Below the pieces are notes generated by a model. The model was not told the origin of the DNA and did no database searches. It saw only the letters and a list, made by a program, of their open reading frames with translations. 64,000 bases of DNA, from the IMG/VR virus record IMGVR_UViG_3300009545_000018, positions 310,001 to 374,000 of that record; one strand, given 5' to 3'. Both the position numbers and the translations under genes were made by a program. Below, one piece after another: positions 614-60,869 of the stretch. The first letter of the stretch is position 1. Each line of letters starts with the position of its first letter.

Positions 614-664
614 AATTAAATGTGTATATATCCAATTAATATTAGAGTATAATGTTGAGGATCC

Positions 665-1356: not shown

Positions 1357-1386
1357 TCAATATTTTAATATTTAATATGAGGAACT

Positions 1387-2286: not shown

Positions 2287-2327
2287 GGGCACGACGAATC
2301 TACTAATATGTTGATATATAGTTTATT

Positions 2328-5267: not shown

Positions 5268-5557
5268 GTAAAGGCTTTTAATTTTTCAAATCTTGACAAG
5301 GTATCATGGTTATTTTTGACATATAAGTCTAATTCAATAACATCATCTAACGAAATTATTGGTAATTTAGGAAGATTAAAATTAGTAATTCTGGCAACTA
5401 TATAAAAGCCTGCAGCATCCACATACCTTACTGATGCCGCGTCTGGATTATGAGATACCGCGCTCCAATAGCAATTGACTGAAATATTATGATCTAGTCT
5501 TTCTTTTATTTGAAGTAAAAGACTTAATGTATCAGTAATTATATCTTCTTTATACAT
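5264..5557 (-). CDS. Hypothetical protein, KLKxF-tail array 1 (ends RFEKLKAFT)
   Basis: First gene of the array, 6 nt after the 2H-ParB gene; shared C-terminal motif. Confidence 0.7.
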   Translation of the reverse strand: MYKEDIITDTLSLLLQIKERLDHNISVNCYWSAVSHNPDAASVRYVDAAGFYIVARITNFNLPKLPIISLDDVIELDLYVKNNHDTLSRFEKLKAFT

Positions 5558-5563
5558 AAAATA

Positions 5564-6592
5564 TTATCGATCTTTTTGTCGACGCTCATGAGTTGGTGTT
5601 AAGTAACCATCAGGATCGATAAATGCTAATTTATAAAACATATTAATTTTATCAAATAATGATAATTTTGTTTGATGTGGAGGGGTTTTAACCCAATCAT
5701 TTACTAATGCAGGCACATGAGTATAACCTAATTCTTTAGAAGCTGCTATACGATGAATTCCGTCTATAATGACGAATTTGCCGCCACCATCACGATGTGC
5801 AATTCTTATAGGATCTAGTGTTACTCCATCTTTCATTTTTTGTAACACTACATCATATTTTTCTTTACTCCAAATAGGCTTATCTTCAATGACAGAAATA
5901 GGTATTATATCAAAATAGTATAATCCCCATCCACCATATTGATTATATTCTTCTTGAAGAGCATCATCATCACCATTAAACATTTCTAAAAATCTTTTAA
6001 CAGCCAAATCATCATATTTATAGTGACTTACTTGAGCGGTTTTATAGTAGGATTCAATTTTTGATATTAATTCAGCACGTTTTTCTGGTTTTTTTAATTG
6101 AAAATTGACGAATAAACGACTATCACCATAATCGCCGCCCCATAAAACTATATCTTGAACAGTAAATGTTATGGGATCTATCTTAAATTTTTTAAATTTT
6201 TCTAGCTCTTTATCATAAGCTAGTGTAACATGTGGATTAAAATCTTTAAAATTTTTTTTATAATCAATTTTTTCTTCATCAAATTTTGCTTTGAGCTTAT
6301 CAGAAAGTTTATGAATATCATCACTTTCAACACGAGCAATAATAGGTAAAGGATTATCTTTATATTTAGGAAAGCTATCTACACAATTAATTGTAATAGT
6401 AAATGGCTCTTCTTTATTGACTACTTCATAAGTAGCTTCTAAAGCTTTAGAGACTTCAGTGATTGGCCAATTATCATCAAAACAAAGGATAGTAATATGG
6501 TATTCTGAAGGCGATTCTTTCACCCCAGGTACATCAATTTCCATTAACATTCTCCCCACCTCAGGGGCTATTCTGACACCAAGAAAAGCCAT
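5564..6592 (-). CDS. 2H phosphoesterase (2'-5' RNA ligase-like) fused to a ParB/sulfiredoxin-like domain
   Basis: Paired HxT motifs YHITI and PHVTL in the N-terminal half; IIDGIHRIAA (DGxHR) with upstream LDPIRI and downstream VPALV typical of ParB/Srx domains. Confidence 0.82.
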   Translation of the reverse strand: MAFLGVRIAPEVGRMLMEIDVPGVKESPSEYHITILCFDDNWPITEVSKALEATYEVVNKEEPFTITINCVDSFPKYKDNPLPIIARVESDDIHKLSDKLKAKFDEEKIDYKKNFKDFNPHVTLAYDKELEKFKKFKIDPITFTVQDIVLWGGDYGDSRLFVNFQLKKPEKRAELISKIESYYKTAQVSHYKYDDLAVKRFLEMFNGDDDALQEEYNQYGGWGLYYFDIIPISVIEDKPIWSKEKYDVVLQKMKDGVTLDPIRIAHRDGGGKFVIIDGIHRIAASKELGYTHVPALVNDWVKTPPHQTKLSLFDKINMFYKLAFIDPDGYLTPTHERRQKDR

Positions 6593-39176: not shown

Positions 39177-42100
39177 ATGGTTTCAATTAGAAGTGTCAAT
39201 GAAATAATATTAAGCCTAATAGATTTTTATAGGGTGGCTCAACCAGATCTTGACGTCAAACCAGGAACTGTAGCTAGAGATTTATTTGTTGATGGACCTT
39301 CTAGTCAATTAGCTTTACTTTACGATGAATTATCTTCAGTATCTAATCAGCAGTCTATGAGATTAGTAATTGGTTCGGATTTAGATAAACTTGCTAAAAA
39401 TTTCGGAATTATTAGAAAACAAGCCACCCCTTCTACTGGAATAGCACTTTTAACATTTTCTTCTATTAATGCTAATATTAATATTAATAAGGGAGATAAT
39501 ATTGTTGCTAATAATGGATTTTCCTTTACCGTTTCAAATGGTATTGCTGTTTCTGCGACATCATCTAATTATTATAGATCAATAGCCTCTAAATTTAGGG
39601 ATCAGTTAGATTTTGCTGGAATTTCCGATGAATTTGCTGTTGAAGTAACTGTTATTGCATCTACTGCCGGAAGTGCTGGTAACATTGGATCCTACTCATT
39701 AAATAGAACAAGTATTGCTGGTGTTTCTAATGTTACAAATATAAATTCTTTTAGAGGTGGAAATGACCAAGAAAGTGATTCTGCTTTTAGAAACAGAGTC
39801 TTATCTTCATTTAGTGGCTCAAGTGTCGGTACTTCTTTGGGATATTTAAATGTCGCTTTAAGTACTTCTGGCGTTTCTGATGCTACCGTTATTGAACCTG
39901 GTGACCCATTAATGACTAGGGATGGCACTATAGTTAATATTTCATCTGATGGAACTCATACAATCATTTCAGAAGGTACTGGTGGTAAAGTAGATGTTAT
40001 TGTTTTAGGTTCCAATTTAATAGAAAATACTGATAGTTTTATTTATAGAGATAAAAGTAATAATAATGATCCTTCTAGTGTAAAAAATGATGTTGTATTG
40101 GGTCAAATTGCCGCCGATGCTGGTAAAACCATTAATAGAAAAAGAATTGATGATATTAAAAATGGTGTTTTACCATCCCAACCTATAGATACTTTATTAC
40201 AAGTGACAGGATCAATTAGTGGCGGTAATTTTGTTGAAAAAAGTATAGATTCATATGGCAGATCTTCTGGCAACTTTGAATTAATTAAAGATCAAGGAGT
40301 TTATGGTGGAAGTCCTTTTGGATTTGATACTTTTCATTGGGTATCAGATAGAATATCAGATTTTAGTGAAGATAAAATTAAGGGGCAATTTAATGGGCAA
40401 GATGCTGTTACCTTTACTGATGTAACAGAAATTTCTAATGTTCAACAAAATTTATCTATTACTAATGAAAATAGTATAGTAACTTCGGATCGTTCAATTA
40501 TTCAATTATTACATACCCCCATCACTAATGTTACTAGGGTTTTTAACGTTAATACAGGGGAAAGATATATTATATCAAATCAAAATTTAGATCAAACTGG
40601 AACATTTAATACTACGGGTAGAATTAAAATTGCCGGAAATACATTACCTACAGCATCTGATACTTTACAAGTTGACTATAGTTGGATTGTTAATTATGAT
40701 CAATATTCTGATTTTGATGGATTGCTTGGAACATTTAATCCCAGATCTGTTACAGATAGTATTGATTGGGGATATGCATCAATTGTAAAAGATGAAAAAA
40801 TTAAATTTGATTTAAATATTGGCAATAATTTTTTTCAAGGAACATCTTCTCAGCCCATTGCTAGTATTCTATATGCTAATAAATTTTTAGAAACTGATGG
40901 TTATGTAGAACAAGTAACATCTGGAACTTTTGTTGGTAGATTGTCTGTTGTTATTAACAAATTACAAATACTTACTTCTAGTGTAGATTCGGTAACATTA
41001 AAGAATAGTAATGTAGAATTATATTCAACAGCACAAGGCAATTCCTTTGTTAGTACAGCTACTGAAGTTGTTGGAATAGAAATCTTATATGTTACAACCA
41101 TAATTTTACCATCTGATACTACGGCTATAATAGGAGATAAGGTAACAGTAATATTAAATAGTCAAAATGTATTTTCTTCAGGCTTAGTTTCTGGTAGTAA
41201 TAATGGTAATCAAATTACTATACCATCCACATTAATTGATACTCCTGCAACTTCAATAATATTAAGGGTTACTTATGTTTCTGGTGTTTCAGATTTGTTA
41301 TCAAATGCTACAACATCTTTGCCTGCTAGTAGAAATGGCAATGGATTTAATTTATTAAGTAACAATGGATTTACTAATTTTAGTGTTGTAAATATGGTTA
41401 GAAGAGAACATCAGGTTGTTCAAAAAAATCTAAGCAACCAATATTATGTTGAATTAAATTTACCCAGCACGGAATTTACTTTAAATTCTGATCAAATAAT
41501 TTCAGCTATTAGATTATCTGATAATTTAGAATTATGGAACTTTAGTAATGTCGGATTAGTATCTATTGGAACGTCTGGAAATTTTCAATTAATTTTTAAT
41601 GGTGTTAATTCTCCTGTTATTGGAGATAGAGTATTAGTTATATATTATGCCACTGATTCTAGAAAATTTCAACCTTTTAGTTTCAGTAATTCATTGATAA
41701 AAACAAAAATAAATGAATTGTCCATTGATTCTCCGAATAAATTTAATGTTTCTATTAATGAGTTTGTTAATCAAGGATCAGGATTATCATTTAATATAAT
41801 AGAGCCAAATACTAACATTATTTTATATGGAGTGACTGATGGTTATTTATCCAATACCTTAGTGAATGGTGTTGCTGACATTTCTAGTTTAACAGTTAAT
41901 TTTTCATCTACTAATGATATTTTATATAAAAAAATTGTAATAACTGGAGCCAATACTGCAAATAATAATGGAATATATGATATTATTGCTTATGATAATT
42001 TAACTAATAAAATAAAAATAACAAATACATTAAATAATATAAAACATGATCAAATATCTATTGTAAGAATATTAGATGGACAAGAATTATGGAATTATTC

Positions 42101-43277
42101 TGGAACAATAGATATTGCTAATAATAAGTTAATATTTAATGAGACAAACTCTAGTCATGTTAATGATGGAGTTTTTGTTATGTTTTTTAACTATAATAAT
42201 TTAAGAAAAGCTCCGACAAGAATTATTGGAAATATCGTGGATCAAATTAATAATACTGGAGTAGTTTCTATTGCAGGAACTTCTTTATCAATTGCAAAAG
42301 ATATTATTTTTACTGCCACTAATACTGGGTTAAAGTTAAATTTATCAGAGGCTTTAAGAAAAACTTTAAATATTAGTTCGACAGCACCATTATCTAGCGG
42401 ATATAAAATTGCTAAAATTATAAAAGTAGAAAAAGTAATTACTGCCAGTGCTACTGATGATACAGTTTTAAAAGTTTTAAGTACATATGATGTTAAAAAT
42501 ACAATAATACAAAATAATTTATTATATTCTGATTTTATGTTAGGAGATTTATCTTTACAAAATCTTGATTTTATTTTACCAAGTACACAAAACAATACTT
42601 TAGATGTAGAAACACATAATTTACCTAAATTAGGAGATAAAATAAGGATCACTTTTTATTATACTTATGATAATGACTCTGAAAACCTTTCATATACTAG
42701 AAATGGAACATTATATAGTAATAAAAAATTTGCATTAATAAATAAGATTTATATTTCTAGTGGATTTAAATCGTCACAATCTACAAAATTTACTGTAACT
42801 TCATTTACCCAACCCAGCTTGGGTGCTAGATATAAAGTCTTTTATGACTACTTAGCTCCAAAGCAAAATGAAAGAATTATAGTTAAATATAATTATAATA
42901 AATTGTTGGGAGATGTTACTTTTAATTTAGAAGATGCTAGACCTATTAATGCAGATGTTTTAGCTAGAGAAGCAAAATTAACTGAGTTGAATCTTACTAT
43001 GAATGTAGTGATTGATAATGATTATAAGTCGTCTACTAATACGGTGTTACAGAATTTAAGAGATAAATTAACTACAGCGCTGACTACCAATACTTTGGGC
43101 AATGTTATTGACGCTGTAACTTTAATAAATACTGCTCAAGCAGTTGCGGGCATTGCAAGAGCTAGAATATTATATTTTAATAAAGTTGGTGGAATTGGGC
43201 AAGTACTTAAAGTGCAAGCACAAAAAGATGAATATTTTGCTCCAAACAATGTTATAATTAATACTGAGACTAGATAA
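39177..43277 (+). CDS. Baseplate J-like (gp6) wedge protein with large insertion
   Basis: LDVKPGTVARDL, DLDKLAKNFGIIRKQATPSTG, AGSAGNIG, GGNDQESDSAFRNR baseplate-J motifs; follows gp25. Confidence 0.85.
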   Translation: MVSIRSVNEIILSLIDFYRVAQPDLDVKPGTVARDLFVDGPSSQLALLYDELSSVSNQQSMRLVIGSDLDKLAKNFGIIRKQATPSTGIALLTFSSINANININKGDNIVANNGFSFTVSNGIAVSATSSNYYRSIASKFRDQLDFAGISDEFAVEVTVIASTAGSAGNIGSYSLNRTSIAGVSNVTNINSFRGGNDQESDSAFRNRVLSSFSGSSVGTSLGYLNVALSTSGVSDATVIEPGDPLMTRDGTIVNISSDGTHTIISEGTGGKVDVIVLGSNLIENTDSFIYRDKSNNNDPSSVKNDVVLGQIAADAGKTINRKRIDDIKNGVLPSQPIDTLLQVTGSISGGNFVEKSIDSYGRSSGNFELIKDQGVYGGSPFGFDTFHWVSDRISDFSEDKIKGQFNGQDAVTFTDVTEISNVQQNLSITNENSIVTSDRSIIQLLHTPITNVTRVFNVNTGERYIISNQNLDQTGTFNTTGRIKIAGNTLPTASDTLQVDYSWIVNYDQYSDFDGLLGTFNPRSVTDSIDWGYASIVKDEKIKFDLNIGNNFFQGTSSQPIASILYANKFLETDGYVEQVTSGTFVGRLSVVINKLQILTSSVDSVTLKNSNVELYSTAQGNSFVSTATEVVGIEILYVTTIILPSDTTAIIGDKVTVILNSQNVFSSGLVSGSNNGNQITIPSTLIDTPATSIILRVTYVSGVSDLLSNATTSLPASRNGNGFNLLSNNGFTNFSVVNMVRREHQVVQKNLSNQYYVELNLPSTEFTLNSDQIISAIRLSDNLELWNFSNVGLVSIGTSGNFQLIFNGVNSPVIGDRVLVIYYATDSRKFQPFSFSNSLIKTKINELSIDSPNKFNVSINEFVNQGSGLSFNIIEPNTNIILYGVTDGYLSNTLVNGVADISSLTVNFSSTNDILYKKIVITGANTANNNGIYDIIAYDNLTNKIKITNTLNNIKHDQISIVRILDGQELWNYSGTIDIANNKLIFNETNSSHVNDGVFVMFFNYNNLRKAPTRIIGNIVDQINNTGVVSIAGTSLSIAKDIIFTATNTGLKLNLSEALRKTLNISSTAPLSSGYKIAKIIKVEKVITASATDDTVLKVLSTYDVKNTIIQNNLLYSDFMLGDLSLQNLDFILPSTQNNTLDVETHNLPKLGDKIRITFYYTYDNDSENLSYTRNGTLYSNKKFALINKIYISSGFKSSQSTKFTVTSFTQPSLGARYKVFYDYLAPKQNERIIVKYNYNKLLGDVTFNLEDARPINADVLAREAKLTELNLTMNVVIDNDYKSSTNTVLQNLRDKLTTALTTNTLGNVIDAVTLINTAQAVAGIARARILYFNKVGGIGQVLKVQAQKDEYFAPNNVIINTETR

Positions 43278-50414: not shown

Positions 50415-53400
50415 ATGACTAAAAGAATCCCAGTATCTGGAACACAAAATATTTGGTTTGATACAGAACAAATAGACAATAATGATTTAAGTTTAGAACA
50501 AAATTATAATGATACTGTAACTTCTGGTATCATTAATAATCATATTGGAAGCGGCATATTATCTGAATCTTTAGAACAAAATACTATATTTGATTCTTTA
50601 TTAACTAATACTTTTTTAGATGGTATAGCTGTTAATCCACAAAATCAACCAACTGATAATAATTTTGGTAATCAATTAGAAATAACACTTACCAATTCAA
50701 AAGTTGCTTCAAAAAAGACTGTAAAAGTTGGTATAATAGGATTAGATTTTGAAGGAAATCTTCAATTTGAAACCTTTTATTTTAGAGTAAATGAAACACA
50801 AATAAGTAGAAAACATTTTGCCAGTATTTTAATACTTTTATTTAATGACTTTATAGGAGATCCTGATCTTTCTATGAACTTAGGTGGTAGAATTCTTATT
50901 AGAGAAGCTAAGCCTATGACTTTGTCAAGAGATCCTATAATGGTTGCTCAAGATGTAGAACCTAATTTGTTTTTTAGAGACTTTTTTCTTAATGGCTCTA
51001 TTTCCTTGCAAGCTTTATTACAGAATGCCTTACCAACATATAATATTGATTCTTTAAATATATTTACTGGAGAAAAAGATAATAAGGTATTATTAAATGG
51101 AGATGTTACTACACAAATAGGACAAAAATTTGTTGCAACAACTAATAATATTCAAAAAATCACTCTTTTATTATCAGTAAGAAACTTAGATTTAAATAAT
51201 GAAAATGATTTAGTATGGAATGGTGACTTGGTTGTTAGTGTTTATCCATTACAATCTGACATTGATTGCCCAAGTGATATTTCTCCAAGTTTACCAATTG
51301 ATTTTGCTCCATCTAATATTCCATTGGCACAACTTAGTGTGAATTATAATTCACTATTAGCTAATGGAATTGAACTTGGTTCTGTGCCACAGCCTGTAGA
51401 TTTTGTTTTTAGTAATAGTTTAGTTGCCACAGGAAATGTTCTTGTGCCAGGAAATTATTATGCCATAGCAGTTAAAAGATCTGGTTCGGCAAACAAATGT
51501 GATATTTTATTTTCTGTAGGTAGTGATAGGGTTCCAAACTCTAGAATTACTTCTTTTACTGGTGATCTATGGGTTGATATTCCAGAAGAAGATTTATGGT
51601 TTAAAATTTGGACCGACTCTGCCAAAGTATCTGATGGACAAGCATATGATACTGGTCATGGAATTACTATAACAAAAACTATTATTGATGAAGAATCGCA
51701 ATCAACTATTGATTATTGTTTTGATGATATTCAATTTGTTGGAAATGATGTATATAAAGCGGTTGTATCAGCCACTACATTAGAATCTGTACCAGTACCA
51801 GATCAAAGTACTGGAAATCCAGTTTTGAGTAGAAAACAATTTGTTCCAAAAGTTGACTTGTTAAATACTTTAGATATAGAAAATTTAGATGTAGCATCAG
51901 AGCCTTTATTAATTGGATCAATTTCTGATAAAAACAGAAAATTTTATGATTCTATTTCTGCTAACTTAAGTTCAATTTTATATTCTGCCACTATGGCAGA
52001 GGATGAACTATTGATTAAAGTAATTGATGACCCCACTGATGTTACAAGATACAATACTACTGTAACTGCATTAGTCACTAATTTAATAAATGGTGATTTT
52101 ATAGGAGCAAAAATTACTCCTAATGCCAATAATCCCTCAGTTTTTTATAGGGTAGCCAGCGCTCGTTTGTGTTCAATGATTGTTGGTGACGTTAATGGTG
52201 ACGGTATTATAGATAATGATGATTTAGATTTATTAAATTCTTATTTAGGATATAATCTAAATGTAGGTTTACCTTTACATGCCAGTGTAACGACTGATGG
52301 ATATACTACATCTTTTATAAATGGATATAAAACATATATTCAGCCATTTACTAATTTATTTTCTGTAAATTTTCAATTAATTGATCCAAATACTGGAGAC
52401 ATTGTTGCTGCTGGAATAGATGGTGTTTTAGTTGCAAATCCAACAGATCCAAGATTAGCTGAACTAACTAGTTCATCGGTAGATTTTAGTTCTATTGTTG
52501 GATTGAGTAGTTATAAATTAGTTATATTTGCTGGTGGTAATGACGCTGACCAGGGCGGATTTGATGTAACTTCTGTTGATACATTATCAAATGTAATTAC
52601 TATTAGAAAAGTAATTTTAAATGGAGATGTTTTATCTCAACTATTACGTGCGGACATTGATGGAGATTTTCATATTACATATACTGATGGTTATTTATTA
52701 CAAAGTTATATAAACAAACTTAGTTTAGATATGCCTCCACCAACTCCATATCCTGCTCCTACCAGTAATCCTTATGATAAAATTGGTACTAGATTTAATG
52801 TTTTAAGATTTAAATTAGAAAAATTTGTAGATAGAGATGATGATTATACTAATTTAAGTACTGGTCGAGCTGCTGGAATACATGTTCCTCAAGATATTTT
52901 TTCTGAGGATGGTTATTTTTCATCGCATGATTTTTATACTTCACCCGTACCAATATCATTTGATAAACAGCTTACTTGGAGTGAATCATTAATTGTAACT
53001 AACAGTAGGGCAAAATTAGTTCCAACTGTTTTTACTACACAAACTGGTTTTAGTCAAAATGACTGTGCTATAAAAGGCACTAGTTGTGAAATTTATCCTT
53101 CAATACCAGATTTTGATTCTGGTAGAGTAGATTATTTTGTTCCTAATAATTTAATTATTGGAGATGGCGGAGAACTTAAAAAACCGGATGGTAATTTTTA
53201 CAAGGTAGATTTTGAAGTAGGGACAGTAATACTTGAAATTCCTGATGGATTTTTTGGTTCAGAGAAAACTCTTAATATTATGGATGATTTTGTGGTAGAT
53301 TATACAGGAGACGGTGTAACACGTTTAGGTTTTCCTGCTATGAAATTTGCTGATTGTTCTTATGTTAACAATACGGCTTTGCTTAATGATCAGGTTAGAT

Positions 53401-54152
53401 TTTCTGTTTCAGTACAATCTTTTTCACCTAATATCAATGGTTTGAGTACAGACGGTTATGCCGGAATTATCGTGGATGGTAAAATTGGAGTGTCAGTAGA
53501 TTATACTACCGGATTAATCACATTAAATTTTAGCAATTTATTTCAAGATGAGATTCTTAAAACATTAAGCACCAAAATTCAAATACATGTTTATTTGAAA
53601 AAGGGTGGATTTAATAACTCTCCTCTTTTCATAAATTCTACTAAAGTACAAAATTTATTAAACTTAACCAATTCTTTTAGTGATGCAAACAGCACATCAG
53701 ATTCGGGTGATGCTGGTACTATTGGTATGGTTGTTGGTGGAGCTAGTGCAACCACCAGTATTAATAGTGGCGTTTATGTTCCATTATCAGGCACTTATAG
53801 TTATACTGGTGGAGATGTATTTACTTTAGGACCAAATTGTAAATTAACATATAATGGATTAATAGCAAGAGATTTTATTGTTACTTGCGTATTATCTTTA
53901 AATAAAGATGTATCTTCTGGGTTTGAGATAGATGGAAGTATATCTCTTAGTAATGATTATTTGGGAACTACATCTTCTCCTTGGTTTCAATCTGTAGATA
54001 CTACAGTTAATAAAAGAGCCAATTTAACATTTAATAGATATGTAACATTAACTCCAGGAGCTACAATTTCTCCCATTGTATATGTGCCTGGCGGAACAGT
54101 AAGTGGAAATATTGTTACATTAAATGTTACTATGACCGTTCAGTCTGCCTAA
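50415..54152 (+). CDS. Tail/baseplate-associated protein with dockerin-like Ca2+-binding repeats
   Basis: GDVNGDGIIDNDDLDLLNSYL and ADIDGDFHITYTDGYLLQSYI match dockerin EF-hand repeats; last gene of the baseplate block. Confidence 0.6.
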   Translation: MTKRIPVSGTQNIWFDTEQIDNNDLSLEQNYNDTVTSGIINNHIGSGILSESLEQNTIFDSLLTNTFLDGIAVNPQNQPTDNNFGNQLEITLTNSKVASKKTVKVGIIGLDFEGNLQFETFYFRVNETQISRKHFASILILLFNDFIGDPDLSMNLGGRILIREAKPMTLSRDPIMVAQDVEPNLFFRDFFLNGSISLQALLQNALPTYNIDSLNIFTGEKDNKVLLNGDVTTQIGQKFVATTNNIQKITLLLSVRNLDLNNENDLVWNGDLVVSVYPLQSDIDCPSDISPSLPIDFAPSNIPLAQLSVNYNSLLANGIELGSVPQPVDFVFSNSLVATGNVLVPGNYYAIAVKRSGSANKCDILFSVGSDRVPNSRITSFTGDLWVDIPEEDLWFKIWTDSAKVSDGQAYDTGHGITITKTIIDEESQSTIDYCFDDIQFVGNDVYKAVVSATTLESVPVPDQSTGNPVLSRKQFVPKVDLLNTLDIENLDVASEPLLIGSISDKNRKFYDSISANLSSILYSATMAEDELLIKVIDDPTDVTRYNTTVTALVTNLINGDFIGAKITPNANNPSVFYRVASARLCSMIVGDVNGDGIIDNDDLDLLNSYLGYNLNVGLPLHASVTTDGYTTSFINGYKTYIQPFTNLFSVNFQLIDPNTGDIVAAGIDGVLVANPTDPRLAELTSSSVDFSSIVGLSSYKLVIFAGGNDADQGGFDVTSVDTLSNVITIRKVILNGDVLSQLLRADIDGDFHITYTDGYLLQSYINKLSLDMPPPTPYPAPTSNPYDKIGTRFNVLRFKLEKFVDRDDDYTNLSTGRAAGIHVPQDIFSEDGYFSSHDFYTSPVPISFDKQLTWSESLIVTNSRAKLVPTVFTTQTGFSQNDCAIKGTSCEIYPSIPDFDSGRVDYFVPNNLIIGDGGELKKPDGNFYKVDFEVGTVILEIPDGFFGSEKTLNIMDDFVVDYTGDGVTRLGFPAMKFADCSYVNNTALLNDQVRFSVSVQSFSPNINGLSTDGYAGIIVDGKIGVSVDYTTGLITLNFSNLFQDEILKTLSTKIQIHVYLKKGGFNNSPLFINSTKVQNLLNLTNSFSDANSTSDSGDAGTIGMVVGGASATTSINSGVYVPLSGTYSYTGGDVFTLGPNCKLTYNGLIARDFIVTCVLSLNKDVSSGFEIDGSISLSNDYLGTTSSPWFQSVDTTVNKRANLTFNRYVTLTPGATISPIVYVPGGTVSGNIVTLNVTMTVQSA

Positions 54153-54170: not shown

Positions 54171-54198
54171 TTGACATTAACAGACTTGGTGTTACTAT
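54171..54198 (+). promoter_or_regulatory. Sigma70-type promoter
   Basis: TTGACA (54171-54176), 16-nt spacer, TGn-TACTAT extended -10 (54190-54198), 8 nt before the ATG at 54207. Confidence 0.6.
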
Positions 54199-54206
54199 CG
54201 TAAATA

Positions 54207-54986
54207 ATGAAAAAAAGAAATATTTTTATTATTTTGTTAGCGCTGTGTGGCTGTACACAAAATAAAAATTTAGATACTAAATTATCTATAACAACAATTC
54301 AAGAGCAGTTTATTGTTCCAACTTGTGCACCAGAAATGTTACACATTACTGGCACATATTGTACACAAGTTATTCAATTGTGTAAATCTTATATGGAGCC
54401 ACCCGAAACTACTCCCTTTGCCAGATGTTTAGAATTTAATAAAAGTAAATGCATTGGTAAAAATGTAGAAATGAATTTTTGTATAGATAAAGAAGAATAT
54501 TTCAATCCGATAGATCGCATTCCATTATCCAATGTATCTTGGACAATAGCAAAATCACTTTGTGAAAAACAGAACAAAAGATTATGTTCGGAGCCAGAAT
54601 GGAATTTTGCTTGTGAAGGAGAAGAAATATATCCATATACTACCGGCTATTCAAGACCATCCAAACAATGCAATATAGATACAGTGAAAGATATTATTTG
54701 CAATAATGGACTGTGTGATCATAGAAATTCAGTGGTTCAAAACCCTGAATGTTTGTCACCATTTGGTGTGCATAATATGTCTGGCAACGTTGACGAATGG
54801 GTTGAAGTTCCAAAATATCAACATAGTAAAATTCCAGATTTATGGATGAGATCATCTTTAAAAGGCGGGCATTGGTTACCAGTAAGAAATAGATGCCGCC
54901 CCAAAACAGATGATCATGATGAATCATTTCATCAAATTTCGGTAGGATTTAGATGCTGTAAGGATAGTGATGATTTACTTAAATAA
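54207..54986 (+). CDS. Lipoprotein with FGE-sulfatase (SUMF1 / C-type lectin fold) domain
   Basis: Signal peptide MKKRNIFIILLALCGC with lipobox; RLCSEPEWNFAC, SPFGVHNMSGNVDEWV and GFRCC motifs. Confidence 0.88.
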   Translation: MKKRNIFIILLALCGCTQNKNLDTKLSITTIQEQFIVPTCAPEMLHITGTYCTQVIQLCKSYMEPPETTPFARCLEFNKSKCIGKNVEMNFCIDKEEYFNPIDRIPLSNVSWTIAKSLCEKQNKRLCSEPEWNFACEGEEIYPYTTGYSRPSKQCNIDTVKDIICNNGLCDHRNSVVQNPECLSPFGVHNMSGNVDEWVEVPKYQHSKIPDLWMRSSLKGGHWLPVRNRCRPKTDDHDESFHQISVGFRCCKDSDDLLK

Positions 54987-55701
54987 AATATTTAAAATTC
55001 CCGGTCCTAAAGATTTAGGCATGTCTGATTCAAATAATGCAATGCCTATAGCTTGTTTTTCTAATGATGAGTCTGCTACATGGGAAGATTATTATGCTAA
55101 AGTAAAAAAAGAATATCCTATCAAATATTTTATAGCAGCAACCTTTATTGGATGCTTTGTATCTTTATTTCAAAGAAATAAAAGAAGAATTCAAGAATTT
55201 ATTTATTGGATTAAATGTAATTATTTTAATAAATATAAATACCACATGTTAGACTTACGACAAAGAAAAAATATTACTTATGTTAATAATGGCATTACTA
55301 AATCTATTAAAAATCCAGATTATTATCAATATGGATGGCTAGATGTAGATGATAGAATGTTATATGCAATATTCGGACTATTAAATAGCTTTGTTGAAAA
55401 TGAATTGAATACAATTAAAGTATCAGAAAATGACGTTCAAACAAATCCATTTCTTGCTAAACAAAAAGTTGCTCAGGATGAAATATTAAGTATTTATAAT
55501 TGGTGGAATAATGATCGTTTTGTTGAAATGGAAGAGATAAATAAACTTAGATATAAATGGTCCTCTTTATCAAAATTAAAAAGAATAAATGCCAAACAAC
55601 GAGCTTTGAATCAACTTATGATTAAAGAAAAAGAATTTGAAGATAAAACTGATGAAATGGTTGAAAAATTAATGAAAGTTAGACGTACCTTATGGTCGTG
55701 A
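54967..55701 (+). CDS. Hypothetical protein
   Basis: 244 aa ORF with coiled-coil C-terminus; start uncertain. Confidence 0.6.
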   Translation: MMIYLNKIFKIPGPKDLGMSDSNNAMPIACFSNDESATWEDYYAKVKKEYPIKYFIAATFIGCFVSLFQRNKRRIQEFIYWIKCNYFNKYKYHMLDLRQRKNITYVNNGITKSIKNPDYYQYGWLDVDDRMLYAIFGLLNSFVENELNTIKVSENDVQTNPFLAKQKVAQDEILSIYNWWNNDRFVEMEEINKLRYKWSSLSKLKRINAKQRALNQLMIKEKEFEDKTDEMVEKLMKVRRTLWS

Positions 55702-55714
55702 TATAGTATCATCT

Positions 55715-56854
55715 ATGAAAATATGTTGGTATGGTTTTTTAGCTAAGAATCACTCGTGGAGTATAGTTGCGCAAAACATTTCTAGGGAATTAATCCGTAA
55801 AGGACATCAAGTAGATTTGTTTTCAACCAATGGTATTAATCATTTTCCACAAGATTTGATTCCTAATTTAAAAGGATTTGTTGAAGAAAATACTGCATTA
55901 ACTCCCGATTCTTTTAAAGAATTAGTAGAAAATAAATTAGACAAAGAGTATGATATGCAGCTATCATATACTGCTTTGAAAAATTTCGGGCATCATTTTA
56001 TTCGTGGATCCAAAAATAGATTTGGAATTTGGAATTATGAAACAACAGTTATTCCATCTTCATTTATTAAATATTATAAGTGCGTAGATAAAGTTTTACC
56101 ATCCTCTCAATTTAGTAAGAAAATTTTTACTGATAATGGAATGCCTGAGTCAGCGCAAATAGTAATTCCACATGGCATTCATTTAGATAGATTTAATAAT
56201 TTGGGTAAATATCCAATTAAATCTGACAAAAAATACAAAATATTATGTAATATTGCTCAGCCTCATTTAAGAAAAAATATCCCAGGATTATTTAAGGCTT
56301 GGGGACAAGCCTTTACTAACAAGGATGATGTTTCATTAGTATTAAAAATTTCTAAAAAGGGTGCTAATGGTAAAAGTGACATTAACTTTGATGATATTTT
56401 TAGAAATTTTAAAAAACAATATAAAAATCACGCCGAAGTTAAAATAATTGATACTTTTATAGATGATATAGAGCCATTATATAATGCATGTGATGTAGTG
56501 ATGACTATGAGTTTAGCCGAATGCTATTGGTTACCAGGGCTTGAAAGTTTTGCAGCAAATAAAGTAACAGTGGCTCCTCGTTATGGTGGTCAACTGGACT
56601 ATATGAATAATGATAATTCTATTCTTATAGATGGTAAGGAGATTAAAGCCGATTATAGTATGCAATATTGGGAACCATCTCCATATGCAAAAGCCTTTGA
56701 ACCAAGTCCAGCTGATTGTGCAGCCAAATTACAAGATCTAATTAAGAATTATGATTCTTATCACGCTAAGTTCTCGCCTAAAATGAAAGAGGTGGCTCAA
56801 GAACATACGTGGTCCAAGGTTGCTGACCGCATTTTAGATTTATGTGAGGAATAA
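55715..56854 (+). CDS. Glycosyltransferase, GT-B fold (GT4-like)
   Basis: VIPHGIHL, PHLRKNIPGL, YNACDVVMTMSLAECYWLPGLESFA motifs of GT4 enzymes. Confidence 0.88.
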   Translation: MKICWYGFLAKNHSWSIVAQNISRELIRKGHQVDLFSTNGINHFPQDLIPNLKGFVEENTALTPDSFKELVENKLDKEYDMQLSYTALKNFGHHFIRGSKNRFGIWNYETTVIPSSFIKYYKCVDKVLPSSQFSKKIFTDNGMPESAQIVIPHGIHLDRFNNLGKYPIKSDKKYKILCNIAQPHLRKNIPGLFKAWGQAFTNKDDVSLVLKISKKGANGKSDINFDDIFRNFKKQYKNHAEVKIIDTFIDDIEPLYNACDVVMTMSLAECYWLPGLESFAANKVTVAPRYGGQLDYMNNDNSILIDGKEIKADYSMQYWEPSPYAKAFEPSPADCAAKLQDLIKNYDSYHAKFSPKMKEVAQEHTWSKVADRILDLCEE

Positions 56855-57576
56855 TGTTGTCTATAGTAATACCAGTGTTTAATAAATGGAACTTTACTGA
56901 AGCTTGTTTAAATGATTTGCGCAGTCTTCCGCATAATACACATGAAATTATTGTTGTAGATAACAATAGTACAGATGAAACTCAGCATAAATTATTAAAT
57001 TTATTTTGTACTGAATATGAAGAGATTCGATATCATAAAAACCCTGAGAACTTAGGTTTTGCCAAGGCTTGTAATATAGGTTATTCATTGTCCAAACACC
57101 CTAATGTTATGTTCTTAAATAATGATATAAGAGTTAAATCTAATAAAAATAATTGGACAGACAAGATAATTGAGAAATGTAGTGAGGGATTAGTAGGACC
57201 TACTATGGGACAATTAGACTCTCAATTAAAATTTATTAAAGAATCTAATTGTGTATTACCTGGCAATTCTTATTTATCAGGCTGGTGTATTGCTGGTTCT
57301 AAAGAAACATGGAATAAGTTAGAAATTCCAAGAAAAGCAACTCAACAATTTTCTAATGCCAATGTACCGCAAATATTCTCAGAAGAATATGGCTTAGCAT
57401 ATTTTGAAGATACGGATTTAGGATTTCGTGCACGAAAATTAGGAATTAAAACAAATGTAGTTGATATACCGGTTATACATTTTGGCAAACAAAGTAGTTC
57501 CCAGATTAATACTTATGCACTTTATTCTTATGCAAGATCTATTTTTGTAAAGAAATGGACAAATAAAGTGCCCTAA
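56854..57576 (+). CDS. Glycosyltransferase family 2
   Basis: LSIVIPVFN, IIVVDNNSTD, NLGFAKACNIG, FLNND, YFEDTDLGFR. Confidence 0.92.
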   Translation: MLSIVIPVFNKWNFTEACLNDLRSLPHNTHEIIVVDNNSTDETQHKLLNLFCTEYEEIRYHKNPENLGFAKACNIGYSLSKHPNVMFLNNDIRVKSNKNNWTDKIIEKCSEGLVGPTMGQLDSQLKFIKESNCVLPGNSYLSGWCIAGSKETWNKLEIPRKATQQFSNANVPQIFSEEYGLAYFEDTDLGFRARKLGIKTNVVDIPVIHFGKQSSSQINTYALYSYARSIFVKKWTNKVP

Positions 57577-57914
57577 TGGAAATTGTTTTTAATGCTGTAA
57601 CGTATAATTTAACAAATTGGAAATTTTCTTATGAGGGTAGCGGTGGACAACCAATTCCAACATCTGTTAGTCGTTCTGTAATAGATCTAAAAAATCCATA
57701 TCCAGTATTAAAAGATGAGATTGGATTTTTTATACCTTTAACTAGTCCTGATATTATTTATCAAGTTTATGGGCAAGGATCTTTAACAGATTTTGCAATG
57801 ATATATAGTCGTGCCTTTAATAATATTTCTTATAAGCAAAAAGATCTTAATAAAGCTATGATTCATTTAGATGATTTTTTATTAAAATTAACAAAATTTA
57901 GTTGTTATTTATAG
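57576..57914 (+). CDS. Hypothetical protein, KLKxF-tail array 2 (ends DDFLLKLTKFSCYL)
   Basis: TAATG coupling; N-terminal YNLTNW motif shared across the array. Confidence 0.7.
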   Translation: MEIVFNAVTYNLTNWKFSYEGSGGQPIPTSVSRSVIDLKNPYPVLKDEIGFFIPLTSPDIIYQVYGQGSLTDFAMIYSRAFNNISYKQKDLNKAMIHLDDFLLKLTKFSCYL

Positions 57915-57918
57915 AACG

Positions 57919-58257
57919 ATGAAATTAAAATTTAATAAACAAGAATTTGTACTTTCACACTGGAAAGTGATGAATAACTGTTATTGTAGAGTTTTATATG
58001 TCCCATCCTCTTGTTGTGATTTTATTATAAAACATCGGTCTGTTGGAGCGACTAATTTTTATATAAATAATCATTATATTTATATATCTGGATTAGATAT
58101 TTTAACAATTAGCGGCGAAGGTTATTTGTCAAAAATAGCATATCAGTTTAATAATATTTATAAAGATCGTAAATACAAAATAAAAGAATTAGAAATAGCC
58201 AAAATGGATGTTACTAATTTTATTTTAAAGTATACAAAACTATATTCATTTACATGA
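57919..58257 (+). CDS. Hypothetical protein, KLKxF-tail array 2 (ends NFILKYTKLYSFT)
   Basis: N-terminal FVLSHW motif; shared C-terminal helix. Confidence 0.7.
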   Translation: MKLKFNKQEFVLSHWKVMNNCYCRVLYVPSSCCDFIIKHRSVGATNFYINNHYIYISGLDILTISGEGYLSKIAYQFNNIYKDRKYKIKELEIAKMDVTNFILKYTKLYSFT

Positions 58258-58604
58258 TATTAACGGTAAAAACCAATAATCATACTTTTGTTTTCTCTAA
58301 ATGGATGAAATTCAGAACAAAACATGATTTTAAAAACTCTTATCCAGATTATATTAGATTGAGCGATGATTTTCCTTACTGGGATGTTGAAATAGGATTT
58401 AAATTAATTAGTTCAGAAATAGAGTGGCAACACAACCAGAGTACTGGCATTTGGGAAGCATTCTCTACTCCAGAATTTTACCATGTAATAAAGATTTATA
58501 AAAATCTTTATGGCAGTAAGGTATCATATGATGATATCGAAGCTGCTAAATCAAAAATGGATGAGTTATTAATTAAATATGATAAATTGGGGTGTTTTTT
58601 ATGA
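58254..58604 (+). CDS. Hypothetical protein, KLKxF-tail array 2 (ends DELLIKYDKLGCFL)
   Basis: ATGA overlap; N-terminal FVFSKW motif. Confidence 0.7.
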   Translation: MILTVKTNNHTFVFSKWMKFRTKHDFKNSYPDYIRLSDDFPYWDVEIGFKLISSEIEWQHNQSTGIWEAFSTPEFYHVIKIYKNLYGSKVSYDDIEAAKSKMDELLIKYDKLGCFL

Positions 58605-58918
58605 TTTTTTATTATAAAGAAAAAGAATATTGTTTAACAGATTGGACAATATCTCATCAAGGTTACCATTATTGGCGCAGGTTAGTTATGTCTGATGGAA
58701 AACCCTCCACTTATGATTTTATTGGTTATAGAATTTGGAAAGATAAAGAATATACTTTAGCATCTAGTGGTTTATTTGTAGAAATTCATAAGTTATATAT
58801 TATGTATGATAATACTGCTGGAAAACCTGTAAGAATTGATGATAACACCTTATATCCTTTTAAAGAAAAATTAGATGATTTCTTATTACGAGTTAATAAA
58901 CTAAAGGTGTTTATATGA
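58601..58918 (+). CDS. Hypothetical protein, KLKxF-tail array 2 (ends DDFLLRVNKLKVFI)
   Basis: Start taken at the ATGA overlap; N-terminal YCLTDW motif. Confidence 0.7.
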   Translation: MIFYYKEKEYCLTDWTISHQGYHYWRRLVMSDGKPSTYDFIGYRIWKDKEYTLASSGLFVEIHKLYIMYDNTAGKPVRIDDNTLYPFKEKLDDFLLRVNKLKVFI

Positions 58919-59220
58919 GTATAATCATTGCAAATATAACAATTGGTGATTGGGAAGGCTTTGGTTCAGATGGTTATATTTGGAATTTTTGGAGATTCTC
59001 TTCTGGTAGTTTAGGAATTGGTTTATTAGTTGATAATTCAGATTGGTTTAAATTACAGCCCAATACCGCTACTTGGTCATTGATTTTTCATTCACCATTA
59101 TATTTTTTACAAGATCACTTTAAAGATATTGACTTCGTGAAATATTCAGAATTAGAGTTAACAAAAAAAGAAATAGATTTAAGGCTTGATAAAATTTCAA
59201 AACTTAAAAGTTTTTTATGA
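58915..59220 (+). CDS. Hypothetical protein, KLKxF-tail array 2 (ends RLDKISKLKSFL)
   Basis: ATGA overlap; N-terminal ITIGDW motif. Confidence 0.7.
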   Translation: MSIIIANITIGDWEGFGSDGYIWNFWRFSSGSLGIGLLVDNSDWFKLQPNTATWSLIFHSPLYFLQDHFKDIDFVKYSELELTKKEIDLRLDKISKLKSFL

Positions 59221-59270
59221 ATTTTTAATTCAAGCCATTGACAATTAAATTAATAAAATTAAGCTAACAC

Positions 59271-59313
59271 AATTATCAAGACATAGAATACAATCTAACT
59301 GATTGGGAAGTCC
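59271..59313 (+). pseudogene. Truncated 5' fragment of a further array-2 member
   Basis: Frame reads NYQDIEYNLTDWEV, matching YNLTNW / EYCLTDW of array 2, and stops being family-like exactly at the LAGLIDADG stop codon (59314). Confidence 0.5.
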
Positions 59314-60033
59314 TTAATCTTTAAATTTGAATACATGATTTTCACAATATAACTTATATATATTATGTTTTCTGTCTAAATAAATATTTGCATCTTTATA
59401 AAGCCATTCACAAAAACGTTTGACTTGGCGACTTCCTCCAAAACACAATTTATATGTATTGTTTTTATATCTTTCTGGGTGATATATTTGCCCCCTAATA
59501 TTTAAATTTGATAAAATATTGTTTATTGAAATACACATTTCTTGTGTTGAAGCAAATTCAATATTTAATTGATCTTGATGTATATAGATACTCCCATCAC
59601 CATCAAAATATCCTCTAATAAAATGTTGAATCAAATGATTATCAATCCATTCTGGAAATGTAATATTAAAACTTTTAGCGCCATGACGCCCCTTTTTTAT
59701 TAATGATGTAGACAAATATCTACTGTTTAATTCAAGTCTATATGCAACGTATTTACCTTTATTTTTTAGTTGTTTAAATGGCGGGCGTGGTTTGCCAAAA
59801 AAATTTGCACATTTAACTAAATGATTTTGATCCATTTCTTGTAATTCTATAATAATTTGTCCGGTTTTTTCCTTATTATAAGCATCTGCATAAAAGAAAC
59901 CCAACCAATATGCTTTTTCTTCACAATTAATTTCGTCCATTAAATTTTCTGTTATAATATATTTTCTCACTATAGGATATAAAATTATGCCCAAGATACC
60001 TGAAGTTAAAATAAATTTTGTAGGAGGTCCCAT
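59314..60033 (-). CDS. Free-standing LAGLIDADG homing endonuclease (true start probably the GTG at 59970 or nearby)
   Basis: EEKAYWLGFFYADAY and HFIRGYFDGDGSI motifs, IYLDRK tail; oriented opposite to its neighbours. Confidence 0.9.
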   Translation of the reverse strand: MGPPTKFILTSGILGIILYPIVRKYIITENLMDEINCEEKAYWLGFFYADAYNKEKTGQIIIELQEMDQNHLVKCANFFGKPRPPFKQLKNKGKYVAYRLELNSRYLSTSLIKKGRHGAKSFNITFPEWIDNHLIQHFIRGYFDGDGSIYIHQDQLNIEFASTQEMCISINNILSNLNIRGQIYHPERYKNNTYKLCFGGSRQVKRFCEWLYKDANIYLDRKHNIYKLYCENHVFKFKD

Positions 60034-60869
60034 TGCCGGAAGGAGTTGAGCTAAGAATCAGTAAAGATTTGTTACAACCATTGGTTGTTAATAAGGTTGT
60101 AATGCAAGCCAATACTTGTCTTAAAGGCAGATATGCTTATGATAAAAGTGGTTTAGGTAAATTAAATCAATTAATATCTGAATTACCTTTAACAGTTTCT
60201 GAGGTGAATGTTAAAGGTAAATTTATGTATTGGGTATTTTCCAAAGATGATATAACTTTATTTTATATGTTTTCCACTTTTGGCATGACTGGTCAATGGA
60301 GTTATATTGAAGGTAAACATCCCTGTTTTGAATTTCAATTTTCGGATGGTTCTAAAATATTTTTTAATGATCCGCGCCATTTTGGAACTATTAAGTTTAC
60401 AAATAATAAGCAAGATTTACAAAATAAATTAAATGATTTGGGCTGGGATCCCTTTACTCCATTTAAAGATAATAAAAATTTTATAATAAATGCTCTTAAA
60501 TATAGTAATAAAACTATTAGTGAAGATTTGATGAATCAGAAATTATTTTGTGGTGTTGGCAATTACATACGGGCTGAGGCTTTATATGATTGTAAAATAT
60601 CTCCTTGGTGTTTAAGTAAACATTTAACTGAAGATAATATAATTAAATTATGCGAATCTATTATAAAAGTTATGGAGGAGTCATATAAGCATCAGGGCGC
60701 TACCATTAGCACTTATAAAGACGCTTATGGTGCTGAAGGAAAATATACTAGTTGTTTTAAGGTTTATGGTAAAAAGATTGATACTAATGGTTATAATATT
60801 ATAAAAGAAAAGAGTGGTGACGGTAGGACTATTCATTGGTGCCCCGACATACAAAAAATTGGGAGTTAA
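60033..60869 (+). CDS. mutM: Fpg/Nei family DNA glycosylase-AP lyase
   Basis: TTG start with AGGAGG RBS; PE N-terminus, KGKFMY, FGMTGQW, NDPRHFG, H2TH motif LMNQKLFCGVGNYIRAE, GRTIHWCP finger. Confidence 0.92.
   Translation: MPEGVELRISKDLLQPLVVNKVVMQANTCLKGRYAYDKSGLGKLNQLISELPLTVSEVNVKGKFMYWVFSKDDITLFYMFSTFGMTGQWSYIEGKHPCFEFQFSDGSKIFFNDPRHFGTIKFTNNKQDLQNKLNDLGWDPFTPFKDNKNFIINALKYSNKTISEDLMNQKLFCGVGNYIRAEALYDCKISPWCLSKHLTEDNIIKLCESIIKVMEESYKHQGATISTYKDAYGAEGKYTSCFKVYGKKIDTNGYNIIKEKSGDGRTIHWCPDIQKIGS

Follow-up and report, generated by a model that had tools for sequence, protein, structure and literature searches.

A family of small proteins in a megaphage and the C-terminal tag that it shares with about one gene in six

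The stretch of DNA considered here (the window, 64,000 nucleotides, positions 310,001 to 374,000 of IMG/VR record IMGVR_UViG_3300009545_000018) belongs to an uncultured 448-kb phage and contains five coupled open reading frames (57576-59220, + strand) that encode small proteins of one family. The block is flanked on the left by a gene of a family-2 glycosyltransferase, GT2 (56854-57576, +; Pfam Glycos_transf_2, E 3.8e-20), and on the right by a gene of Fpg/Nei DNA glycosylase with a TTG start (60033-60869, +; Pfam H2TH and Fapy_DNA_glyco). Between the array and Fpg, a LAGLIDADG homing endonuclease of 239 aa is inserted (59314-60033, −; Pfam LAGLIDADG_3, E 4.8e-12), and its ATG overlaps the TTG start of Fpg (CATTG). 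A sigma-70-like promoter match (TTGACA, 16 nt, TG-n-TACTAT) was found at 54171-54198 (+), in the only sizeable gap upstream of the gene run 54207-59220, but this is a consensus match only, and promoter-like sites are not enriched in the region (39 found, 49 expected).

Copy 1 (57576-57914, +, 112 aa, subtype 1, YNLTNW ... DEIGFFIPLTSP ... KFSCYL) overlaps the GT2 stop codon with its start (TAATG). It was detected with E 6e-14 by a profile built only from foreign homologs without their tails (see below), and it is sister to gene a1 of the related contig L007 (support 100/85, 44% identity). Copy 2 (57919-58257, +, 112 aa, subtype 2, FVLSHWKV ... KLYSFT; E 9.7e-14) lies in a clade with the L007 a3-like gene and database protein P0060 (support 98/92) and is 52% identical to L007 a3. 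Copy 3 (58254-58604, +, 116 aa, subtype 3, FVFSKW ... YPDYIRLSDDFPYWDVEIGF ... KLGCFL; E 1.7e-11) lies in a clade with database protein P0016 (support 100/99), and this protein was used for modelling. Copy 4 (58601-58918, +, 105 aa, subtype 4, EYCLTDW ... KLKVFI; E 1.7e-12) groups with L007 a4 and with gene b6 of another related contig, L009 (support 98/91). The longest reading frame of copy 4 starts at GTG 58592 and gives 108 aa, but the ATG at 58601 is the likelier start, since it gives an ATGA overlap and corresponds to the 105-aa form held in the protein database (P0004). Copy 5 (58915-59220, +, 101 aa, subtype 5, ITIGDWEGFGSDGYIWNFWRF ... KLKSFL; E 5.4e-12) groups with L009 b5 and L007 a5 (support 99/93). 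Three junctions in the array are ATGA overlaps.

A remnant of a sixth copy follows at 59268-59312 (+) as an open stretch HNYQDIEYNLTDWEV without a start codon, cut at the 3' end of the homing-endonuclease gene. In three-frame translation the open stretch reads HNYQDIEYNLTDWEVLNL (59268-59321), aligns at the DNA level with the 5' ends of family genes and abuts the stop of the LAGLIDADG gene at 59314-59316. L009 has an intact sixth gene here, and the endonuclease is absent at this position in both L007 and L009.

The observation made in the preliminary description, that five coupled genes share an N-terminal aromatic-x-hydrophobic-S/T/G-x-W motif and a C-terminal KLKxF-type helix and are followed by a truncated sixth copy, was confirmed. 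The N-terminal x-h-[STG]-x-W motif and the C-terminal D-x-F-L-x-K-x-x-K-L-x-x-F-h motif are both present. A profile made from 73 foreign homologs, from which the last 14 residues had been removed, found exactly these five reading frames plus one distant copy at genome position 51554-51883, with E values of 2e-15 to 2e-11, while the next hit had 0.1. A HMMER profile of the six own copies found 74 foreign cluster representatives, matched over their full length, and 72 of these 74 carry the C-terminal tag. In an alignment of 83 family sequences, W17 and D103 are the only columns conserved at 90% or more. The middle parts, which had been called hypervariable, are divergent and contain indels but hold conserved core positions (IG, W, G, Y..Y), so they are not hypervariable. 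The family has no conserved 7-mer.

No Pfam family was found at E<=0.1 for any of the five copies, and the best PHROG hit (E 0.0058) concerned one copy only and a family of unknown function. Pfam and PHROG searches with the proteins of arrays 1 and 2, and Pfam searches with nine larger tagged proteins, gave nothing usable. No close DNA relatives were found among GenBank phages, and a word-indexed protein search returned self hits only. AlphaFold2 gives a confident model of copy 3 (pLDDT 91.1, pTM 0.83), in which a six- to seven-stranded beta-sheet is packed by two helices. The terminal helix covers residues 92-112, the last four residues are coil, and pLDDT falls from 95-98 to 75 in the last block. 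The predicted fold has no significant match among known structures. The best Foldseek E values were 1.1 in PDB, 0.2 in BFVD and 0.2 in AFDB, TM in the ESM Atlas was at most 0.43, and searches of this atlas by features and by shape gave nothing above chance. The top structural neighbours, RWD-like alpha+beta domains (Ctf19/Mcm21, Knl1, GCN2 RWD), also have an antiparallel sheet followed by helices, but they share no sequence similarity with the model, and their VIA-align Z of 5.0-5.5 is below the level of 7-8 at which the tool places noise.

The interpretation given in the preliminary description was only partly supported. The five genes are true paralogs with one fold, conserved ends and a shared tail, and a sixth copy was truncated at the endonuclease insertion. 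They evolve faster than their neighbours, as orthologs are 36-52% identical, against 64-88% for the flanking GT4, GT2 and Fpg (71-77% for GT2 and 64-69% for Fpg in L007 and L009). However, tandem amplification in the sense of a recent or lineage-specific expansion was not supported, because in the maximum-likelihood tree each of the six own copies lies in a different supported clade with orthologs from other phages, and L007 and L009 carry 5- and 6-gene arrays at the same GT2-Fpg position. The idea of a diversifying specificity cassette was not supported either. The longest direct repeat in 57400-59400 is 29 nt at 79% identity, no template-like repeat was found, local alignments between the paralogs reach only 22-38% identity, and every copy has older orthologs.

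The suggestion that two families share one tail was likewise not supported, since the tail is shared far more widely. Array 1 of the same window (4034-5557, −) consists of five coupled reading frames of 89-113 aa that end in KLKLFI, NLKSFI, KLKVFC, KLKAFL and KLKAFT. They are not members of the array-2 family (best E against its profile 4.3), and their tail is kept in the orthologs of the relative G003. A neighbouring 240-aa protein (3319-4041, +), which is related to a Zn-ribbon family and has no Pfam hit, ends in the tag variant KLKIFK. Across the genome, a regular expression for the tail found 81 of 726 genes, against about 3 expected, and an iterated position-specific score found 124 of about 726 at a false-positive rate of 0.1%, against 0.7 expected by chance. 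The consensus of this nine-residue tag is [KR]-h-x-K-[LMI]-K-[AVS]-F-h-COOH. K or R at position −8 was not part of the seed expression, yet it is present in 106 of 128 tagged genes. In the DNA, 27 exact KLKAFx-stop sites occur, against 0 for the reversed control pattern. With the tail removed, the tagged proteins fall into two 14-member families, three pairs and about 47 singletons. The 124 tagged genes come from at least 50 unrelated N-terminal families. A profile-profile comparison (hhalign) of array 2 with the Zn-ribbon family aligned only the last 18-22 columns, and a model of a second family shows the same layout of a beta domain, one terminal helix and an AFL coil.

The tag is selected at the protein level, as codon use at its Leu, Lys, Phe and Ala positions equals genome-wide usage. 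It is kept in 16 of 17 orthologs in G003 and in 9 of 11 in another relative, G001, at 30-50% overall identity. Tagged genes look like an accessory set. None of them has a transmembrane-like segment, their bodies are slightly acidic, 91 of 128 sit next to another tagged gene, and only 9% have a homolog in G001, against 29% of untagged small genes. Bacillus phage G and the 485-kb uncultured phage LR745208.1 lack the tag expansion, with 1 and 0 KLKAFx-stop sites. As for the host, a genome scan with the epimerase found only a 23% match, the tail sheath is 24-30% identical to those of Bacillus phage G, Lysinibacillus phages and an Eggerthella phage, and the Shine-Dalgarno signal is weak, which gives only a faint hint of a Firmicute host. 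In the literature, no paper was found that holds KLKAF in a relevant context or describes a shared C-terminal tag in phages, and a jumbo-phage review mentions phage ClpP only briefly.

In our opinion, array 2 is a block of five old paralogs, plus one decayed and one dispersed copy, of a phage-restricted family of about 105 aa, each predicted to be a small soluble domain, and the terminal helix with its 3-4 residue coil is a portable module that the phage has put on about 124 small, mostly unrelated, fast-turning-over proteins. We read this module as a docking tag for one common partner, with a probability of about 0.45. In this view, the hydrophobic stripe of the helix would pack on the protein's own domain, the lysines, the penultimate Phe and the free carboxylate would be left exposed for the receptor, and the variable body of each protein would bind a different target. 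This geometry is inferred from the sequence pattern, and the exposure of Phe only from the coil state and the lower pLDDT. The analysis itself establishes the family, its fold model and its age, together with the statistics of the tag, the protein-level selection acting on it and its retention in orthologs, whereas the existence of a single receptor, its identity, and any binding to ClpX or degradation by ClpXP remain matters of inference.

The route that seems most likely to us, although it is doubtful in itself, is coupling to an AAA+ unfoldase and Clp protease, where the tag would act either as a degron limiting the lifetime of these proteins or as a tether, similar to the SspB tail (L-x-x-h-x-COOH), that brings bound host proteins to the protease. 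The phage encodes a tandem pair of an inactive ClpR-like subunit (Ser to Asn, His to Gly) and an active ClpP, conserved in G001 and G003, with a 463-aa ORF downstream of them. On the other hand, no ClpX-type AAA_2 unfoldase was found in the phage (the hit is a MoxR-like ATPase), and its YjoB/Cdc48-like AAA protein has no obvious ClpP-docking loop and ends in IYE, an HbYX-like end that is not conserved in orthologs. ClpP/ClpR is also present in G001 with only 29 tagged genes, so its presence does not track tag number. Moreover, arrays 1 and 2 lie inside a structural and glycosylation region, which fits a virion-related role at least as well as proteolysis. No receptor was identified. Searches of the phage for other receptor candidates revealed no beta clamp, no proteasome and no Hsp70, although the search for a T4-type clamp was not validated by its own controls.

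Among known systems, ClpX-directed C-terminal signals, such as the ssrA/LAA and MuA-type (RRKKAI) degrons and the SspB XB docking tail (…LRVVK-COOH), are also short peptides at the extreme C-terminus, portable between unrelated proteins, with basic residues followed by small hydrophobic ones, and the SspB tail likewise has L at −4 and a hydrophobic residue at −1. The pattern L(-4)-x-x-F(-1)-h(0) preceded by K/R is compatible with them but is not the known consensus, it has a nearly invariant penultimate Phe, and it sits on 17% of a viral proteome rather than on a few substrates. The HbYX motif of proteasomal ATPases and the HslU tail (…LSRFIL) share the penultimate aromatic residue, a small hydrophobic residue before it, a variable last residue and an implied dependence on a free C-terminus. 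Here, however, the penultimate residue is Phe in 123 of 128 tagged genes and Tyr in 2, the proteins are small and not ATPases, and no PF00227 match was found in the phage, although a host partner cannot be excluded. The tag does not fit the sliding-clamp motifs (QL[SD]LF or the PIP box Qxx[LIM]xx[FY][FY]), because Gln is not among the seven commonest residues at −7, which is mostly Y, L, I or F. Encapsulin cargo-loading peptides and the coat-binding helices of P22 and herpesvirus scaffolds address unrelated proteins to one shell protein of the HK97 lineage through a short C-terminal helix or peptide, but they show no sequence similarity to the tag, tagged genes are not next to a capsid gene, and there are far more tagged proteins here. 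A functional analogy without homology is provided by the PRANC/F-box-like modules of poxvirus ankyrin proteins, where a large virus attaches one small C-terminal adaptor to a large, fast-evolving set of variable binding domains. PRANC, however, is a folded domain of about 40-50 aa acting in a different domain of life and with different machinery, while the present module is a helix and tail of 9-20 residues.

Other explanations seem less likely. The terminal helix and tail may be only a structural element capping a small beta domain, inherited by descent or spread by recombination among small genes and kept for folding or solubility. In both models, which are beta domains, the terminal helix is part of the fold (pLDDT 90-98), and hydrophobic positions −14, −11/−10, −7 and −4 have the 3-4 spacing of a packing helix. 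This reading is unlikely, because helix-wheel reasoning from that spacing places lysines −8, −5 and −3 off the packing stripe and the A-F-h coil lies outside the helix, yet these positions are the best conserved (K-5 in 92, K-8 plus R-8 in 106 and F-1 in 123 of 128). In addition, MORN-like repeat proteins, Zn-ribbon proteins and array 1 carry the same tail without detected similarity outside it, and a variable last residue after a nearly invariant penultimate one is typical of recognition of a free C-terminus. It is also possible, but still more doubtful, that the basic amphipathic helix and tail would bind the inside of the procapsid or a scaffold, so that the tagged proteins would be packaged and delivered with the DNA. 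The tag is short, basic plus hydrophobic, and sits on many unrelated cargo-like soluble proteins, and both arrays lie in the window that holds the tail sheath, tape-measure-like and fibre-like genes. However, most tagged genes lie far from the structural module, in long runs of small ORFs at 18-175 kb and 375-433 kb, the major capsid protein was not identified, and 124 different packaged species would be unprecedented.

Assembly of the five proteins with each other or with themselves through their C-terminal helices, with translational coupling serving stoichiometry, is quite improbable. The ATGA coupling and the weak similarity to RWD-like kinetochore dimerisation modules speak for it, but that similarity is below noise. 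Array content and order differ between relatives (L007 lacks subtype 3, L009 lacks subtype 2, and subtypes 4 and 5 are swapped), which argues against a fixed hetero-complex, and one family member lies 316 kb away. A homodimer prediction for copy 3 gave a score of 0.00, which counts neither for nor against. Finally, a DNA or RNA element at the gene ends (a promoter, a ribosome landing site for the next gene, a terminator or a recombination site) is already disfavoured and remains a remote possibility. Tagged genes are followed within 20 nt by the next gene more often than other small genes (72% against 52%), and the last codon is often NNA before TGA, which creates the next ATG. Nevertheless, synonymous codons follow genome-wide usage (for example, Leu is encoded by TTA 41, TTG 13, CTA 13, CTT 7 and CTG 3 times), and every KLKAFx-stop site listed coincides with the 3' end of a reading frame.

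A bolder reading, which is unlikely but not excluded, is that this megaphage lineage runs its own protein-addressing system, in which a phage-encoded receptor co-evolving with the tag would route more than 100 variable small effectors to one machine, which could be a protease, a particle or a compartment. Related lineages use tag variants such as KLKALW, which fits co-evolution. This would be the first proteome-wide sorting or degradation code described for a bacterial virus.

Huge phages carry hundreds of small genes that nobody can annotate, and here about 124 of them share one short, strongly selected C-terminal peptide. This converts a mass of orphan genes into one testable system, and once the binder of the peptide is found, the role of a sixth of the genome becomes approachable. 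The array-2 family adds a new small predicted fold that is conserved across related phages as a set of distinct, long-lived paralogs. If the tag is a degron or a protease tether, it would be a viral counterpart of targeted-degradation adaptors and a ready-made portable tag for the still unknown host, and if it is a packaging signal, it would define the delivered proteome of a megaphage.

The studied window (bases 310001-374000) belongs to a 447,763-bp IMG/VR virus record; its GC content is 31%, and CheckV rates it as complete. The only sequencing run listed as holding this virus is a rhizosphere metagenome. The window carries tail-sheath, tape-measure-like and very large fibre-like genes. By tail sheath, the nearest cultured phages are Bacillus phage G, Lysinibacillus phages and an Eggerthella phage, all of them only 24-30% identical. 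One of the fibre-like proteins, consisting of 1245 aa and encoded at 50415-54152 (+), contains two dockerin or EF-hand-like stretches, GDVNGDGIIDNDDLDLL and ADIDGDFHITYTDGYLL, seen in the translation only. Two uncultured relatives were used for comparison. The first of them, G001, is a 452-kb genome with terminal repeats that shares 270 proteins with this phage at a mean of 51% identity, whereas the second, G003, is a 127-kb fragment sharing 155 proteins at a mean of 66% identity.

Five same-strand ORFs of 101-116 aa fill the positions 57576-59220 of the window. Three of their junctions are ATGA overlaps, and the first ORF overlaps the stop of the upstream glycosyltransferase gene. Copy 4 most likely starts at ATG 58601 (105 aa) rather than at the upstream GTG. 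The N-terminal motif h-[STG]-x-W and the C-terminal motif D-x-F-L-x-K-x-x-K-L-x-x-F-h are present; the observation made in the preliminary description of this region was confirmed. The best sigma-70-like match in the region, with an extended -10 element, is located at 54171-54198 (+), in the 54-nt gap before the gene run 54207-59220 that ends with the array. This hints that the array is transcribed together with the glycosyltransferases from a host-type promoter.

After copy 5 there is a 93-nt spacer that holds an open stretch, HNYQDIEYNLTDWEV..., having no start codon. This stretch aligns at the DNA level with the 5' ends of the family genes and ends at the stop codon of a minus-strand LAGLIDADG endonuclease gene (59314-60033), which has a Pfam match and whose ATG overlaps the TTG start of Fpg on the other strand (CATTG). 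The endonuclease is absent from the related contigs L007 and L009, where Fpg is preceded either by an intact sixth gene (L009) or by a 70-nt spacer (L007). Therefore, the earlier claim of a sixth copy cut off at this insertion is right. Another LAGLIDADG-type gene, judged from its sequence motifs only, was found at 2328-3329 (+), so that one such gene lies next to each of the two tail-bearing arrays of the window.

BLASTP between the copies with their tails removed found nothing at E 1e-3, and local alignments between the copies reached only 22-38% identity over 75-99 residues. Nevertheless, a HMMER profile of the copies, searched against 1.84 billion cluster representatives, returned 74 foreign proteins of 71-135 aa, nearly all matched over their full length. 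As the decisive control, a profile was built from 73 of those foreign proteins with the last 14 residues deleted and was searched against the whole tail-deleted proteome of the phage. It hit exactly the five array genes and one further gene at genome positions 51554-51883, at E 2e-15 to 2e-11, while the next hit scored 0.1. Array 1, the other tail-bearing array of the window, and all other tail-bearing proteins are not members of this family.

Using the 83-sequence alignment, AlphaFold2 modelled copy 3 at pLDDT 91 and pTM 0.83. The model has six to seven strands, a short helix, a 14-residue helix and a terminal helix covering residues 92-112, with the last four residues predicted as coil, where the confidence drops. 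No match above noise was obtained in any of the libraries searched. The best Foldseek results were E 1.1 in PDB, E 0.2 in BFVD and E 0.2 in AFDB clusters. VIA-align against PDB representatives gave at best Z 5.5, for RWD-like kinetochore domains, although this tool places noise at 7-8, and the TM in the ESM Atlas was at most 0.43. The predicted fold was therefore not assigned to any of those in these libraries.

Related contigs carry the same arrangement of GT4, GT2, an array and then Fpg, with five array genes in L007 and six in L009. A more distant relative (contigs L011 and L010, IMGVR 3300032233_003207 and 3300034198_027699; GT2 64% identical) lacks both the array and Fpg and goes straight from GT2 to the 340-aa protein that lies downstream of Fpg in this phage, and the array and Fpg together therefore behave as one insertion or deletion unit. 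In a maximum-likelihood tree, each of the six own copies falls in a separate clade with foreign orthologs, and no two own copies are sisters. Ultrafast-bootstrap/SH-aLRT supports run from 98/91 to 100/99, and copy 1 pairs with the gene a1 of L007 at 100/85. Gene content and order differ between the relatives: subtype 3 is missing in L007, subtype 2 is missing in L009, extra subtypes occur in both, and subtypes 4 and 5 are swapped in L009. Orthologs are 36-52% identical, while the flanking genes are 64-88% identical, and so the family evolves faster than its neighbours, but under constraint. The copies share no DNA repeat longer than 29 nt. This is an old, maintained set of paralogs with gain and loss, and not a recent amplification or a mutagenic cassette. 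The interpretation proposed in the preliminary description was partly right.

The tail was found to be genome-wide. A simple end-anchored regular expression found it in 81 of 726 non-overlapping ORFs, against about 3 expected from internal positions. K or R at position -8, which was not included in this expression, turned out to be conserved as well. An iterated position-specific score over the last ten residues, with internal positions as the null and at a false-positive rate of 0.1%, found 124 tagged genes of 726 in this phage (0.7 expected by chance), 29 of 685 in G001 (0.7 expected), 5 of 157 in the G003 fragment (0.2 expected) and 0 of 62 in G005, another fragment (0.1 expected). A quarter of all proteins of 200 aa or fewer in this phage have Phe as the penultimate residue. 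The consensus is [KR](-8) h(-7) x K(-5) [LMI](-4) K(-3) [AVS](-2) F(-1) h(0).

With the tails removed, the tagged proteins fall into a 14-member CCCH Zn-ribbon family, a 14-member family of MORN-like repeat proteins, three pairs and about 47 singletons. More Zn-ribbon members were added by the position-specific score, and this large family of small proteins (MxCPxC...C...H) has about 25-30 tagged members in several arrays, at genome positions 428939-433054, 41190-42918 and 51014-52728. Profile-profile comparison (hhalign) of the array-2 alignment with the Zn-ribbon alignment aligned only the last 18-22 columns. The AlphaFold2 model of the Zn-ribbon family (pLDDT 88.5) again shows a beta domain, one terminal helix and an A-F-L coil, and its only structural neighbours are non-significant polo-box domains (E >= 0.2).

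Codon choice at the conserved Leu, Lys, Phe and Ala positions mirrors genome-wide usage. There are 27 exact KLKAFx-stop sites, every one listed coinciding with an ORF end, against none for the reversed control pattern, and the constraint is therefore on the peptide. The identity of the last residue is, however, partly set by gene overlap. When the stop is TGA and the next gene overlaps (ATGA), as at 58254, 58601 and 58915 of the window, the last codon is NNA (TTA, ATA, ACA, CTA), so that the variable last residue of the tag depends in part on the start codon of the next gene. TGA stops make up 35% among tagged genes, against 25% overall. The tag is present in 72 of 74 foreign members of the array-2 family, and orthologs of tagged genes keep it in 16 of 17 cases in G003 and in 9 of 11 cases in G001, despite 30-50% overall identity.

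Tagged proteins are soluble, with no transmembrane-like segments, and have slightly acidic bodies. Their genes are clustered, since 91 of 128 are adjacent to another tagged gene, and are poorly conserved between this phage and G001, where 9% have a homolog, against 29% of other small genes. In IMG/VR, only a handful of contigs show multiple tags, and several of them come from a single metagenome. One 6-kb contig (L033, IMGVR_UViG_3300005537_000138) has at 177-5618 nine tandem MORN-like paralogs that all end in KLKALW, KLKVLW or KLKFLW, a lineage variant of the tag with Leu instead of Phe at the penultimate position and a fixed final Trp. Bacillus phage G and the 485-kb uncultured phage LR745208.1 lack the expansion.

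The family, its age, the statistics of the tag and its constraint at the peptide level follow from the analyses, while any function, including binding to a receptor or degradation, is inferred. In our opinion, a strictly C-terminal position, a nearly invariant penultimate aromatic residue with a variable last residue, conserved lysines that helix-wheel reasoning places off the packing stripe, and portability across unrelated domains are together the signature of a docking or sorting peptide read by one receptor, rather than of a fold element. The phage-encoded machinery that could connect to such a tag is a conserved gene block including a ClpR-like subunit, a predicted active ClpP, a 463-aa helical ORF, a DUF192 protein, an FtsK-like ATPase, topoisomerase IA and a YjoB/Cdc48-like AAA protein. 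The tandem Clp protease genes (Pfam CLP_protease, 155 and 169 bits) are located outside the window, at genome positions 221802-222981 (3802-4978 of the locus L114), and are conserved in G001 and G003. When read by eye against the E. coli ClpP motifs, the catalytic Ser and His of the first appear to be replaced by Asn and Gly, whereas the second keeps Ser, His and Asp. They are followed by the coupled 463-aa ORF, which has no Pfam hit. The AAA protein (453 aa; genome 229774-231135, L114:11774-13132) is closest to B. subtilis YjoB (E 9e-35) and to Cdc48/VAT, has an N-terminal region of about 200 aa without assignment, and is well conserved in G001 and G003 (60-72% identity), being a candidate unfoldase or receptor by sequence alone. 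No ClpX, clamp, proteasome or Hsp70 was found in the phage.

Thus, the tail may tentatively be considered a docking tag, its most likely use being to couple the small proteins to an unfoldase and Clp protease, either as a degron or as an SspB-like tether. Capsid loading and a purely structural role are the main rivals of this reading, whereas a DNA-level element is effectively excluded; the homodimer prediction gave no answer and is not used as evidence in either direction. Summarizing these data, it may be concluded that the finding is larger than the one first described and represents a new phage protein family embedded in a proteome-wide C-terminal tag system, the reader of which is so far only inferred.
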